Shown: positions 56,601 through 62,457, counted from the stretch's first letter. The stretch is 64,000 nucleotides of DNA from Lytechinus pictus (GCF_037042905.1 NW_026974140.1:15438001-15502000); one strand, 5' to 3'. Numbers and translations are program-made. Notes: generated by a model not told the origin, from the letters alone.

Positions 56601-59600
56601 GCTGCAGCATTCAATGTCACACAAGAATTGATTACAGGTAAATAATGATAATTATTACTTATACAAGGCATTTTAGTAAATAAATTAATGTCATATTTCG
56701 CTTGCTACTTTCAATCCGAGACCAACAGGGTAAACATTTTCCATGTTCCCCTCTACGGGCTTTGCCCATAGGAATACTGTACAAAAACAGAGGGCAATAT
56801 CGGCCATATTTCTGCCAGTGCGCTTGGCGCAGTAGGAACTGATTTTGATCGCTAATTTCAGTATTTGCGAAATCTGGTTGGAACCAGTTTGTGAACCAAT
56901 GCATTGTAGATAATGCGCAGCCAGTGCATACGTATTCCCAGCTAATCAAACCCAAGCGCAAGATTTTTACGCAATAAGTGTATGTGCGCGCCATACATGA
57001 TGCGCGACTGCACGGTAACAATTGAGTCACAATTGCTTAGCAAGGATTACTTCGCCAAATTTGTGAATAACCTGATATCAGAAGTAGTAATAAGCAAACA
57101 GGCATATAAATTGTTCCAAATAATAGCTTGAATTACACATTATACAGCTGTAGGTAATAATATTGATATTGACTGGCTCTCTTTCTAGAAACATCAAATA
57201 TATTGCCCTTAAACCAATCATATTGCCCTCGTCTAAAGACTCAGGCCAATATGATTATGTTGCAGGCAACATATTTGATGTTCACCTCAAGGCCAGTCAA
57301 TATTATATATAATAGTGCCAGTTTTTCCATGTCATGTGTGATAGATATGACAGTAATTGGAACTGCTTTATTCAGGTAATCATATTGACTCTTCATTCAC
57401 TGATGGTTTAAATAAATTAATCCTTTTGAATGGCTGGAAAAAACTGTCACTAAATACTGTTTGTGAATGACAGCTTATTGGTCATGAAAAAAATCAAGAA
57501 ATTTTCAGAACTTGAACTTGGAACTATGTGATTTAGTCTAGTGACATATTTGCTTGTAGTTCTGCATCATTTTCATGGCATTTTTGCAAGTGGATGAGAA
57601 ATGTTGGTTTGCATTCTCATTCAAGATGGTTTCTTTACTGACTATTGGTGGGCTGATCATGTATCACAGAGAATGGTCTAAATTATGGTATCAATGTAGA
57701 TCTAGCTACTAATGTTATATATGTTTACATTCTTATTTAAGATGGTCTACTTACTGCTGGTCATGATATCAGCGATGGTGGGCTGATCACATGTCTCATA
57801 GAGATGGCTTTTGCTGGTAACTGTGGGATTAATGTAGACCTACCAACTAATGATGATGGTGAGTGGACTTTGAATTTTAGTATATTTCAAGGAAAGGGTC
57901 TTTTAATGGGAAAGGAGGTTATGAAATGTAAAAACATATTATGATGTTTTGTCTAAGTACCTTGCATTTTACCTTATTAATGAATGGTTTGAGTAGATTT
58001 ATTGACATCTCTCACATGGATTTCACTTTAGCTTAGTTTGCAATAAACATGGACAGACAGTTCTAGGAAAACTTGTCTTAGAGACTGCCCAAGTTGTCTT
58101 CCAGGAGAGCATGATCATTAGCTCTGGTTGTCTGGCAAGTTGCCAGATCTGACAACTTTCCTTGATTTTGATTGGTGGAGAATATCATCTGACAAATCCT
58201 TTGATGAAAGACTCCCCTGGAAAGGAGGTATCCGCACAGCATTGTTCCCGGGGACTTGCCTGATCTCTGGGGCAGTTTTCGAGTGGGAATTGTAACAGAC
58301 AGTCTCCTTGTTAAGTTGTCATGTGTGGTCAAGCGATCCATACACAGAGCTGCCAACCATTACGTTTTTGCCGTAATCATTACGTTTTTTCATTCAAATT
58401 ACGGCATTATGGTTTTTCTTTTCAAATTCCGTTTTTTGACAATTTTGATAATGTGTGTACATAATTGTATGTATGTGGAGTGCGTGTTGAGCCCACTGAA
58501 CTAGAAATACGTATTTCTAGTTCAGTGGTTGAGCCCGAGATGAGCCTGGTATTTGCACGTGCGTAGTCGCCTGCCAGCCGGTTTTCCAACGCACTTTAAT
58601 AATTTGATAGCGTGCACGTACATATACGTTAGTTGAATATGCGAGCGGCATGCATGGTACGAATCGCGATGTATAGCGACTGGTAAATACGTCTGTAAGG
58701 ATGATGACGTCATCCAAGATGGCAACTTACGATGACAAACGAAAGGATCGAGGATGATTATGTTTTGATCATCATTTGAAAGGAAATAACAGTAACTGCG
58801 GTCTAAGGTACGATATTTCTGAATTTTATATATTTTATCTTAAATTTTCATGTAATTTCTTTCCTATAAAGTGATGTTTTATGTACAAAAAAACGATCCG
58901 AAAATTAGATTTCAGAATTTAGATCTAACGTTACTGCTAATACGTTGTCTTTACGCACGGGCCAACACTCTTCAGGTGATCGAGCCAACGTTTGTTCTTG
59001 CAGCGCAGAGCGAGGAGTACGATGAATTGGGTAGGGTAATTCCCAAATGTAGTAAGAGAAGAGTCCATTTGTAATGGAGGGGGATTTGGAGGTTTGAGGG
59101 AAATTATTATTCCATTTGCAAAATTTTACAAAAATACTCATCATATATATTAAAGATTGAATCATCAAAAGATATTTTTCATATACTTTAAAATTAATTG
59201 TTGTGATAAAGAAATGAAATTTTGAGGCTATTTTCTTGAATTGATTAATATCAATTCCCTTCGGATAACGGTACTGTCTGGTTAATTTTCATCAACTCGT
59301 AATCGTATCAAACAAATACGATGAATTCGGCTTTGAAAAGACCTGGAAAGCTCTTCATTGGCCCTTGAAGTAATAATTCTGGGTGATATTCAACATTTAT
59401 TGATAGTTTCACATGATTTATACTAGAGAGATGTCCTACTGCCTTTGGAATTCATTAAAAAAGTCGGCACTTTAGCATTCAGTTTAGCAGGAATGGGAAG
59501 ATTTCTTCCCCGGTTCTGGCGGCCTAGATGTCTGCTCTATAGTGCCGTCACTGCTGGGGATGATTGAGTGTGCGTGCAGTGTGATTGAGGCTGAGCTGTG

Positions 59601-62457
59601 CACATCGTGAAGTGATTTACGATGGGACTTTTGTGGAATGATTTCAACTTATCTATAGATCTATTTGAATTTTAGATTAGATTGATTTATGAATAATTTT
59701 TCTATATTTGTGGAATGTTACATGTACACTTCCATTTTATGACACTTTAATTTTAAAGGGTACTGTTTGGCAAAAACAATGTTACTTGGGAAGAGAAGTC
59801 TGAATTGATGTCAACTTTTTTTTTATATTTCTCTTAGTCTACAATTTGGTAGTTTTGTCAGGAAACTCAACATAAAACAATTAATTATTTTAGAAGTGGA
59901 AAGGAAGCCCCAGAAAAATGGGGCCCTAAAAATGTTCACCAGAACTGATTTTGGTGCCCCTGAAAGAATTTTTTCTCGACAGATCTTCACTTTGATAAGT
60001 GCCGGAATAGGTTGCACTACAAAATGAAAGGCCTACTTGTCATTTTTAGAAAAATTTGCCTAGGTGCCCATTTGACTAGAATAAAAGTGGCCTTCATGTC
60101 CTTTAGAATGGCCTTGATACCCCTTGAAATTTTGGGGCATCCAAGGCCACTTTGCCGGTTGCCCCAAGCTGAAAGTGCCCATTTGAAAATGGCCTTGCCC
60201 CTCTCAATTCTTAATTCAAGCCCTGCTACTGACTTAATTAAAATAAGGGTCCAATTTGTAACGCTCCGTTACTTAGCCCAGACTAGGCCTAGAGATTAAC
60301 TTTTTTTAAATTGTTCACTGCATACATACTTTTTGCATTGGATGTTTGTCGCATGTCGTTTTAAGGTTCGTTTTAACACATTCCTTTTTTTTGTTGGAAA
60401 TTCCTTTTTTTGGCCATAATGATTCCTTTTTTTGCTTGCACAAGGTTGGCAGCTCTGCATACATTTCAACATATTTGCATTTCAAGCATGTGTGTATGTC
60501 ATGAATGTACCTAAATATAATCATGTTATGAATTAATTACAGCTAAACCACTTGAGTTGCTGTTTTCTGAAGAACTGGGTCTCGTATTGGAGACTACTCA
60601 ATCAGATGCAGAGGCAGTGTGTAGGAGGTATACAGACCAAGGAATCACATGTAGTGTCATAGGTCAAACAGGGGGAGAATCAGCTGAAACCAAGGTAGGG
60701 GAAATTGAATTATTAATTGATATCAGCTCTAGGTCGAGCAGTACATCAATATAATCTTGTAGTTTCCAGACAGAAATTTAACATTCTGTCCTTCTAAAGA
60801 AAACATTATAATTAGTGATACACTAATACTGTGGCTAAATTGTTCATCTTAATTTAGAGTAAATATTCGTACCAAGATGTAAGTGGGGATATCAAAGTAA
60901 GTCTGGACAAGCAACTAAGAAATAAGAGAGATAAATTGGATGCTTGATGAAATTTTGACAAATTATCTGCCAGCACCATTGAAAAAGATTGCTTAGCAAA
61001 AAAGAGTTTGTATAGGTAGTGTTCAGGCTTTCAACCATAATGTCATTGAAAATGAGTTTGATTATTTTTTGCAGATTTAATAATCCCTAGTTCTTAATTC
61101 AAACACTGTCTGTCTTGTATATTCTTCATTCTAAGATTGTGATCAACATGAATGGCAATACCATCCTGGATGATTCTATGACACGCCTCCGTGATGTATG
61201 GGAAGCAACTAGTTTCCAGCTAGAACGCCTTCAGACCAATCAAGTTTGTGTTGTTCAGGAGGAAGCCCTGCTCAAAAATAGGAAAGCACCCCCGTACAAG
61301 CTGACCTTTGACCCTCAGCCGCCGACTCCAATCCAGGAGACAAGTGAGTTTATCGTCTTACTGAAATTAAAGCATGGCATTCTGTTTTTAAATGAACATG
61401 AATGTCAGATTTCAAAGTAGTGTTTATCGTTTCATCGAGTTTGCTGATCATACTACTAATTGCTCAAACATTTGGATTGGTGTGAACAGTATCTTAATAT
61501 GAATTTTTCATTGCACTTTTCAGAATTTCTCTGATTAAATTCTTTATTTTGAACATGAAAATTTTGTAATTTCAAGTACTCCAGTGGGGGATGGTGAAGA
61601 TGGACGATTGCAATCTGGAGTTGGGTCTCAATTGTGTATCTATAGAGTAGGAGTCAATTGAATCTCAATGTTTGGATTAATTTTAATTGCTAATTTTCAG
61701 ATTGACCCCAGATATTTGTTCATAACAGAAAATATATTTATCAATATCCTATCAAAAATGAAATACTAAACAAATGATCCTTTTTTTTTCTCTCTCCAGA
61801 CCGGCCAAAGGTAGCAGTGATCCGTGAAGAAGGAAGTAATGGAGATCGTGAGATGTTAGCATCGTTTCATATGGTAGGCTTTGAAGCTTGGGATGTCAAT
61901 ATGCAAGACTTAGCAAGTGGGACCTTATCTCTCAAAGACTTCAGAGGGGTAGCGTTTGTTGGAGGATTCAGCTTTGCTGATGTTATGGGTTCAGCTAAAG
62001 GTGAGTACTTTCAATCAAAGCTTTTATGATATTTCATGAACTTGATAAGCCTTAGGGCCAGGGGTCAAATGTAGCAGTGTCTTTAAAAAAACCTTGCCTC
62101 ACATCCGCGGCATTGTTTTATGTATTATGTTGTTTTGTATAACTGTTATGATGTAATTCCAAAATCTTTTGATTCTTAATGTATGTATTTTGCTTTTAAG
62201 AGATGAGGAAAAGGATAAACTTGAATTTTAACTTTTTTTCAAGAGGTTTTAGATAAATTGTAGACTTTTTCATTGTTTCCTGGTTCCCTTATTAGGATGG
62301 GCAGCAGCAATCCTATACAACCCTGTAGTGAGAGGAGAGTTTGATGCCTTCAGAGCTAGATCAGATACCTTCTCATTAGGAGTCTGTAATGGATGTCAGC
62401 TGATGGGTCTACTAGGTTGGGTGTCTCCTGATCAAACACAGTCTGATGGTAACCAAG
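44611..62457 (+). CDS. PFAS: Phosphoribosylformylglycinamidine synthase (FGAR amidotransferase), coding exons 1-21; gene continues beyond the right edge
   Basis: Phase-consistent exons: 44611-44755, 45490-45622, 46268-46563, 46967-47075, 47712-47852, 48722-48849, 49768-49896, 50370-50630, 51094-51324, 51788-52011, 53503-53646, 54015-54146, 54522-54752, 55096-55276, 55708-55791, 56482-56637, 57742-57858, 60543-60694, 61136-61343, 61800-62000, 62296-62457 (or -62448). Motifs: [118 protein letters not shown] (glutaminase nucleophile). Confidence 0.97.
44894..45117 (-). mobile_element. tRNA-derived SINE
   Basis: Head GGAGCGTTGTGGCCCAGTGGATAAG (A box), B box GGTTCGAATTCC, a non-tRNA body and a (TTA)n-like tail. 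Confidence 0.8.
47997..48211. mobile_element. Palindromic MITE
   Basis: GGGTGTTGCAAGAAA...TTGCGATCAATTGCAA pairs with TTGCAATTGATCGCAAGTTTCTTGCAACACCC. Confidence 0.8.
49411..49729. mobile_element. MITE
   Basis: TIR GGGCTCGTATCCTGAAGTCAGGTTTAA / TTAAACCTGACTTCAGAATACCGGCC. Confidence 0.8.
52205..53355. mobile_element. Non-autonomous hAT element with internal tandem repeats
   Basis: Exact 8-bp TSD CTCTTCCT on both sides; TIR CAGTGGCGTA / TACGCCACTG; internal repeated units containing GCGAGCGCGAGCTGAAA. Confidence 0.9.
57610..57713 (+). pseudogene. Decayed tandem duplicate of PFAS exon 17, including its acceptor
   Basis: CATTCTCATTCAAG|ATGGTTTCTTTACTG...TGGTGGGCTGATCA...AATGTAGATCTAGCTACTAATG parallels CATTCTTATTTAAG|ATGGTCTACTTACTG...TGGTGGGCTGATCA...AATGTAGACCTACCAACTAATG, with deletions. 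Confidence 0.8.
58345..60457. mobile_element. 2.1-kb non-autonomous hAT-like element with a 6-bp TSD
   Basis: CATACA | CAGAGCTGCCAACC ... GGTTGGCAGCTCTG | CATACA; subterminal ATTACG repeats. Confidence 0.85.
58494..58527. mobile_element. 34-bp perfect palindrome in an exact 8-bp duplication (candidate P-superfamily excision footprint)
   Basis: GTTGAGCC | CACTGAACTAGAAATAC GTATTTCTAGTTCAGTG | GTTGAGCC. Confidence 0.75.

Follow-up and report, generated by a model that had tools for sequence, protein, structure and literature searches.

A 34-bp palindrome in a Lytechinus pictus repeat as a probable transposon excision scar, and the transposon family behind it

A perfect palindrome and the repeat that carries it

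The window analyzed here is a stretch of 64,000 nucleotides from Lytechinus pictus (GCF_037042905.1 NW_026974140.1:15438001-15502000; C20:15438001-15502000 in the assembly), and within it two inverted arms abut between two copies of the same 8-mer, which raises the question of how such a structure came to lie inside a repeat and which enzyme was responsible. A letter-for-letter check revealed that positions 58486-58535 consist of GTTGAGCC, two adjoining 17-nt arms, and GTTGAGCC again, with no spacer between the arms and 100% reverse complementarity (Table 1); the 17+17-bp palindrome inside an exact 8-bp target-site duplication (TSD) described in the first-pass annotation was thereby confirmed base by base. 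A repeat finder run on the window reported fully matching (100%) arms of 18+18 nt, since one base is added to the palindrome by the last C and first G of the TSDs. A window-wide search located the 17-mer only in these two arms, and by arithmetic 64 kb of random sequence should contain ~6e-11 perfect palindromes of 34 bp enclosed by 8-bp direct repeats. The feature is very probably a transposon excision scar, namely the repaired donor site of an element that has left.

Table 1 Coordinates of the probable scar and its host repeat in the window
Feature	Position	Strand	Remark
Host repeat, 14-bp inverted ends CAGAGCTGCCAACC	58345..60457	+	CATACA flanks; carried the scar to ~32-34 places
Left TSD copy, 8 bp, GTTGAGCC	58486..58493		8-mer single in empty-site host copies
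Left arm, first 17 nt of the transposon terminal inverted repeat (TIR), CACTGAACTAGAAATAC	58494..58510	+	Same sequence as the 40-bp TIR tip in long elements (L031, L033, L065)
Right arm, first 17 nt of the other TIR, adjoining the left arm	58511..58527	-	Exact reverse complement
Right TSD copy, 8 bp, GTTGAGCC	58528..58535		8-mer single in empty-site host copies

The palindrome sits 149 bp inside a host repeat of 2.1 kb. The flanks of this repeat, which the first-pass annotation labels a hAT element (window 58337-58344 and 60458-60465), carry the 6-bp CATACA on both sides, and not an 8-bp TSD. We searched the genome with the first 556 bp of the host and found that, among the best 40 copies, 34 include the palindrome at 96-100% identity and six are shorter (514-517 bp). 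Three of the short copies were aligned and lack exactly 42 bp, with GTTGAGCC present once, and the flanking 8-mers are therefore a true target-site duplication. The left junction (host, 8-mer, and terminus) occurs 32 times in the genome, every time in a scar-bearing copy (32/32). Since both scarred and empty host copies exist and all 32 junctions are scarred, a single insertion-plus-removal took place in a master host copy, and the host then spread. The scar in the window is thus not an independent event and was inherited with the host repeat. Here the alternative offered in the first-pass annotation, that the scar had been copied along with its host, proved right for ~32-34 host copies, and the empty site that it proposed to look for exists as a single GTTGAGCC in at least six host copies, so that the palindrome is not a constant part of the host. 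No site with one occupied and one clearly orthologous scarred copy was found, and all 32 host junctions are scars.

The parent family and its scars across the genome

Allowing at most one mismatch, the 17-mer matched the genome 410 times in forward and 409 times in reverse orientation (819 in total; 812 Mb searched), and the reversed 17-mer, used as a control on the same genome, matched 3 times forward and 4 times in reverse (7 in total). A chance or host-intrinsic palindrome was ruled out by such reversed-sequence controls together with the empty host sites. The 17-mer forms the outermost part of a 40-bp TIR that is perfect on either side of the 395-bp element L033 and at the outer ends of L065, and the family is characterized by the termini CACTGAACTAGA(A/G)ATAC, 40-bp TIRs, and an 8-bp TSD. 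Long elements possess two types of ends, one with 83 copies and the other with 102 copies at no more than one mismatch, the latter count taking in the ends of a 163-bp unit. Pairing of end coordinates yielded ~60 elements that range from 1.7 to 8.75 kb, the majority being 3.0-3.2 kb long, and all long elements that were read have perfect 8-bp TSDs, e.g., GACATCAC (L031) and GTTCTAAC (L065). Longer parents with this terminus and 8-bp TSDs, for which the first-pass annotation had called, are consequently present. Long reading frames, Pfam matches, and similarity to the P-type proteins of the genome were all absent from L031, L032, L065, and L137.

Several family members have unusual arrangements. 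Two ~3-kb elements lie head to head in L065:493-6760 (C6:9010058-9016325), where GTTCTAAC is found three times (left, between, and right), an arrangement that represents successive insertions at a single target. A ~955-bp foldback with ~400-bp inverted arms (L004:1105-2059, L008:1097-2067, L033:318-1078) has the 163-bp (or 395-bp) family unit at its exact center. The 8-mers adjoining this unit are inverted (GCTTCAAC / GTTGAAGC) rather than direct, and the foldback is bounded by ends (TAGCCTGGAGGCG) and 8-bp duplications of its own.

A two-arm pattern (first 11 nt, a gap of 0-30 nt, last 11 nt) recovered 161 structures in the genome and none with the control. Perfect 8-bp TSDs at unrelated loci flanked 32 of the 37 two-arm structures that were fetched, and additional scars were found among single matches of the 17-mer. 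The excision-footprint reading of the first-pass annotation is supported by these results, in that TSD flanks, empty sites, and parent elements with the same ends are all present, and its proposal that further scars should exist was borne out by many at unrelated 8-bp TSDs, with arm lengths peaking at 17.

We compiled the insert lengths of 65 TSD-flanked sites and found that 36 carry 34 bp, reading as 17+17. Inserts of 28 bp (4 sites) have arms that overlap at AT (positions 14-15); those of 30 bp (4 sites) include three with overlap at TA (positions 15-16) and one, L096, that resembles a 34-bp scar with a 4-bp deletion; those of 33 bp (3 sites) correspond to 34 minus 1 nt; and those of 35-40 bp (7 sites) are mostly filler joints, together with L091 (38 bp), which is a 34-bp scar in a shifted reading. 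The fillers are mostly copied from neighboring bases (L026, L131, L132, L133, L135). Asymmetric joints were also detected, comprising 17+10 (L129), 17 followed by GG and 6 (L130), and 17+55 with a perfect TSD (L136). Further sites retain only one side between perfect TSDs, either as 17 nt plus G (L072, L127) or as 17 plus GTG (L081), and in other remnants 17 nt are followed by unrelated DNA (L027, L030, L068, L122-L126). The variants seen in the arms (A/G at position 13, CTGG, CTAA) match variants of the long elements, and the A/A type has more scars than long elements. One locus, L111 (C3:72038604-72038746), contains two 34-bp scars 109 bp apart in an apparent local tandem duplication, one of them with a C-to-A change at its center.

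The same collection bears on whether the 34-bp palindrome could itself be a mobile unit, a miniature inverted-repeat element (MITE) born of one internal deletion and then spread by transposition. The many identical 34-bp copies with fresh 8-bp duplications would fit such a unit, as would the excess of A/A copies over A/A long elements and the failure to find an occupied counterpart of a scarred site. We nevertheless regard it as highly improbable, since it leaves unexplained the one-sided remnants between perfect TSDs (L072, L127, L081) and likewise the 17+10, 17+55, filler, and AT/TA-overlap classes, and the arm variants match several parental TIR variants. Moreover, a 34-bp duplex would be too short for both ends to be looped into one synaptic complex.

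The sites struck by the family were further compared. The symmetrized target logo reads G (60%), T (44%) ... A (44%), C (60%), which fits the P motif GTCCGGAC and equally the hobo motif GTNCGNAC (PMC3276498). At L098 and L110, scars occupy the same position in two diverged copies of one repeat, and both TSD copies carry the variant of their own repeat copy (GATTACAC vs GATTATAC); these two are independent strikes on a hot spot. Similarly, GTTCTAAC has been struck many times; among paralogous copies of the host, this 8-mer harbors the 34-bp scar of L093 as well as additional elements. This site is common to the scarred L093 and the occupied L065, whose flanks are ~16% different, again as a hot spot. 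Because the targets are hot spots, shared sites in paralogues are not proof of excision.

Position and polarity of the cut

The TIR of the family runs on to position 40, and position 17 is therefore not where the homology between the two ends stops. The genome holds 29 matches in which the 17-mer gives way to a non-TIR base at position 19, ~10 of them one-sided remnants and ~8 asymmetric or filler joints. For the 20-mer with a non-TIR base at position 22 there are two such matches, and for the 19-mer with C or T next there are five, no more than one of which is one-sided. Among the 50 two-arm sites listed, no arms follow the TIR past 17-19 nt. On its own, an insert of 34 bp fits a stagger of 17, 18, or 19 nt, because positions 16-19 are the self-complementary ACGT. 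The one-sided remnants eliminate 19, which leaves a stagger of 17, or 18 at the most, an upper bound that draws on about a dozen such remnants. Accordingly, a 19-nt stagger with ACGT cohesive tips was ruled out, 19-nt one-sided arms being almost absent. The stagger read from the scars is thus likely to be 17-18 nt, and the claim of the first-pass annotation that ~17 nt are kept from each end through a long stagger, as with the P transposase, gained support from arms bounded at 17-18 nt.

A different route to 34 bp would dispense with a long stagger. In this scheme of abortive gap repair, flush excision would be followed by short copying of a sister element from both ends and annealing at the ACGT of positions 16-19, giving 15+4+15 = 34. 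The self-complementarity of ACGT makes the length fit exactly, and the 55+17 joint (L136) indicates that repair synthesis sometimes happened. Synthesis tracts should, however, vary in length, whereas the arms stop sharply at 17-18 nt even against unrelated DNA or the TSD, and the second ACGT (positions 25-28) was never used, with no 52-bp class among the 50 sites listed. We consequently judge this route very unlikely.

Excision by a hAT enzyme was also considered. Such excision forms hairpins on the flanks, so its scars lack TIR sequence. The excised element accordingly does not look like a hAT, as 17 nt from either end remain in the scars, against hAT hairpin chemistry.

With a long stagger as the preferred reading, the stagger, the strand polarity, and the repair route can be outlined, each inferred from the geometry of the scars. 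Integration leaves the TSD directly beside the element tip, so the transferred strand would be cut at the tip, and the retained 17 nt would then represent a 3' overhang on each flank. A cut-and-paste element may thus have inserted at GTTGAGCC in the master host copy and duplicated the 8-mer. Upon excision, the enzyme would have cut the transferred strand at the tip and its partner ~17 nt inward (18 at most), leaving each flank with a 17-nt 3' overhang of TIR sequence. End joining could have set these overhangs tip to tip, and fill-in would have produced TSD-17-17-TSD. The host repeat would then have amplified and brought the scar to ~32-34 loci, the window among them.

The excising enzyme and comparison with known systems

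Given that the first-pass annotation had assigned the excision to a P-superfamily (THAP9-like) transposase, we searched the genome with PF12017, PF21787, PF21789, and an 817-aa P-type protein, scoring all or most candidates. This identified ~25 P-type loci, several with open frames, and intact P-type frames elsewhere in the genome contain HTH, RNase H, GTP-binding, and THAP9_C domains. No P-type domain was detected inside the family, either in the ~60 paired long elements or in a giant member described below. Six P-type loci were inspected for the family terminus, inverted ends, and duplications, and none was found; neither such ends nor duplications lie close to the P-type genes at C12, C21/C4, C13, C8, and C7. 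The C12/C4 P-type pair was rejected as a source, its ends (...GGCATTCAC) being unrelated to the family terminus.

Two of the P-type genes are described here in their own right. A THAP9-like open frame of 817 aa lies at L052:7278-9728 (C12:261277-263727), and another of 959 aa lies at L053:6331-9207 with a twin on C4; neither has recognizable transposon ends. The 959-aa gene is inside a segmental duplication of at least 17 kb with 99.5% identity.

We then focused on family ends left without a partner and found two that face each other 60,568 bp apart (C1:37897384-37957951). This 60.6-kb element has GCACTAAC on both sides, with the left flank at L013 and the right flank recovered without mismatch by pattern search; the chance of matching the right-flank 8-mer is ~1.5e-5. 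No inner family ends occur within it in the match lists of the two end types, and it shares a colinear first 1.4 kb with the 3-kb elements. Given the perfect TSD, the lack of inner ends, and the colinear start, this member therefore looks full-length and the short ones look like deletion derivatives. A second candidate giant of 55.6 kb on C3 was discarded, its right end pairing with a normal 3-kb partner.

Inside the 60.6-kb element, four colinear pieces of the KDZ (Kyakuja-Dileera-Zisupton) domain (PF18758) were identified (C1:37907717-37912503), which span model positions 2-48, 51-104, 143-165, and 166-211. Their scores are weak (35, 30, 15, and 13 bits; the best being 35, or 50.5 with its in-frame neighbor), and a TAG interrupts one of the matches. 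Only one other over-threshold KDZ match exists genome-wide (C6:8777007-8777114), and by arithmetic the chance of the KDZ locus falling within those 60.6 kb is ~1.5e-4. No match to PF18717 (CxC4) was detected anywhere in the genome, and none of the six genome matches to PF04434 (SWIM) is in the 60.6-kb element (0/6). The KDZ-like match on C6 is part of a 460-aa open frame away from family ends.

An 8-bp TSD, TIRs, and a PF18758 domain, the last as a weak match, thus occur together in a full-length element, and this element looks like the only coding-capable member of the family, with a KDZ (Zisupton-like) domain. The KDZ gene may instead belong to an unrelated KDZ element nested within the 60.6 kb. 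If it is the family's own, the excising enzyme would most likely be the KDZ transposase of this single full-length member, and we consider it somewhat probable that a cognate KDZ-type transposase acted here. The P-superfamily assignment is not supported by these results, since no member has a P-type domain and the coding member carries KDZ; of the P-like excision proposed with it, the 17-nt geometry gains support and the enzyme does not. The 8-bp TSD and CA..TG ends do not secure a P assignment, because they fit KDZ equally (PMC12730594).

The same scar could still have been made by a P-superfamily (THAP9-like) enzyme supplied in trans, from one of the P-type genes in the genome or from an unassembled autonomous copy. 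To date, P transposase is the only enzyme known to cut with a 17-nt stagger (PMC10983969, PMC2895639); the 8-bp TSD, the CA..TG ends, and the GT....AC target preference fit P (PMC3276498), and the intact P-type frames could have provided the enzyme. Against this, the ~60 paired elements and the giant are devoid of P-type domains, the P-type genes inspected have neither family ends nor duplications nearby, and the full-length member of the family carries KDZ. The target motif and TSD length suit hAT and KDZ as well: a TSD of 7-8 bp, as expected of P, is present without being specific, hAT and Zisupton being alike in this respect, and an encoded P-type transposase is missing from the family. Supply in trans therefore appears unlikely. 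Taken as a whole, an account that combines P-like excision geometry, a KDZ enzyme, and copies borne by the host is one that we moderately favor.

How the scars compare with P excision can be specified. P transposase cuts 17 nt inside the element (Beall and Rio 1997, as cited in PMC10983969), and P donor ends are 17-nt non-complementary 3' overhangs, the "original sequence" being duplication+17+17+duplication (PMC2895639). Known outcomes of P repair include blunt joins, microhomology joins of the overhangs, templated insertions, and joints after partial synthesis (PMC2895639; PMC10983969). Like Drosophila P footprints, the urchin scars have 8-bp TSDs and at most 17 nt of each TIR, and they comprise blunt 17+17 joins, 2-3-nt microhomology joins, templated fillers, one-sided losses, and partial-synthesis joints; the urchin junction spectrum matches P excision class for class. 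In contrast to Drosophila P, the urchin scars are fixed genomic fossils rather than laboratory events, the 17+17 class dominates, and the family has no linked P-type transposase, its coding member having a KDZ domain. Such fixed scars locate the cut of an enzyme to within a base without any need for biochemistry, and they constitute a natural data set on how the deuterostome germ line repairs non-complementary 3' overhangs, with blunt joins, 2-nt microhomology, and templated fillers.

Among KDZ elements, Zisupton and Dileera have 8-bp TSDs and Kyakuja has CA..TG ends (PMC12730594), and members of the superfamily are notably large and carry extra genes (10.1101/2024.08.15.608186). The urchin family resembles them in its 8-bp TSD, its CA..TG ends, its very large element, and the RNase H-like KDZ domain. 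It differs in that neither CxC4 nor SWIM was found in the urchin element, and in size, at 60.6 kb compared with ~6-11 kb for Cryptococcus KDZ. Neither PMC12730594 nor 10.1101/2024.08.15.608186 describes an excision footprint or the cleavage geometry of KDZ, and a 17-nt stagger would, if the KDZ enzyme is true, add to what is known of this superfamily. Cutting with a long stagger is viewed as peculiar to P transposase, and KDZ/Zisupton may be a second superfamily with this geometry. We tentatively propose that KDZ/Zisupton transposases might cut the non-transferred strand ~17 nt inside, as P does, and that the long scars, which here outnumber surviving elements, might provide a countable and datable record of excision and germ-line end joining. 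Beyond the palindrome itself, the present analysis adds the parent family, a sharp 17-nt bound, the junction spectrum, the hitch-hiking on the host, and a link to KDZ rather than P.

Two more distant systems place these scars in context. Like MITEs and other internal-deletion derivatives (e.g., BuT5 with P, PMC3698922), whose non-coding kin share only ends with a coding master, the urchin family has MITE-like kin, namely the 1.7-8.75-kb elements and the 163-bp and 395-bp units. Unlike MITEs, the 34-bp structure is much smaller than any mobile unit known and displays a repair-junction spectrum. For annotation, this implies that 34-bp "MITE-like" palindromes can be scars, and that an 8-bp TSD with CA..TG ends is insufficient to name a P element. 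As with Tc1/mariner footprints, the urchin donor sites are marked by retained tips of both ends and can be counted genome-wide; whereas Tc1/mariner elements use a TA target and leave 2-3 nt per side, the urchin scars hold 17 nt per side within an 8-bp TSD.
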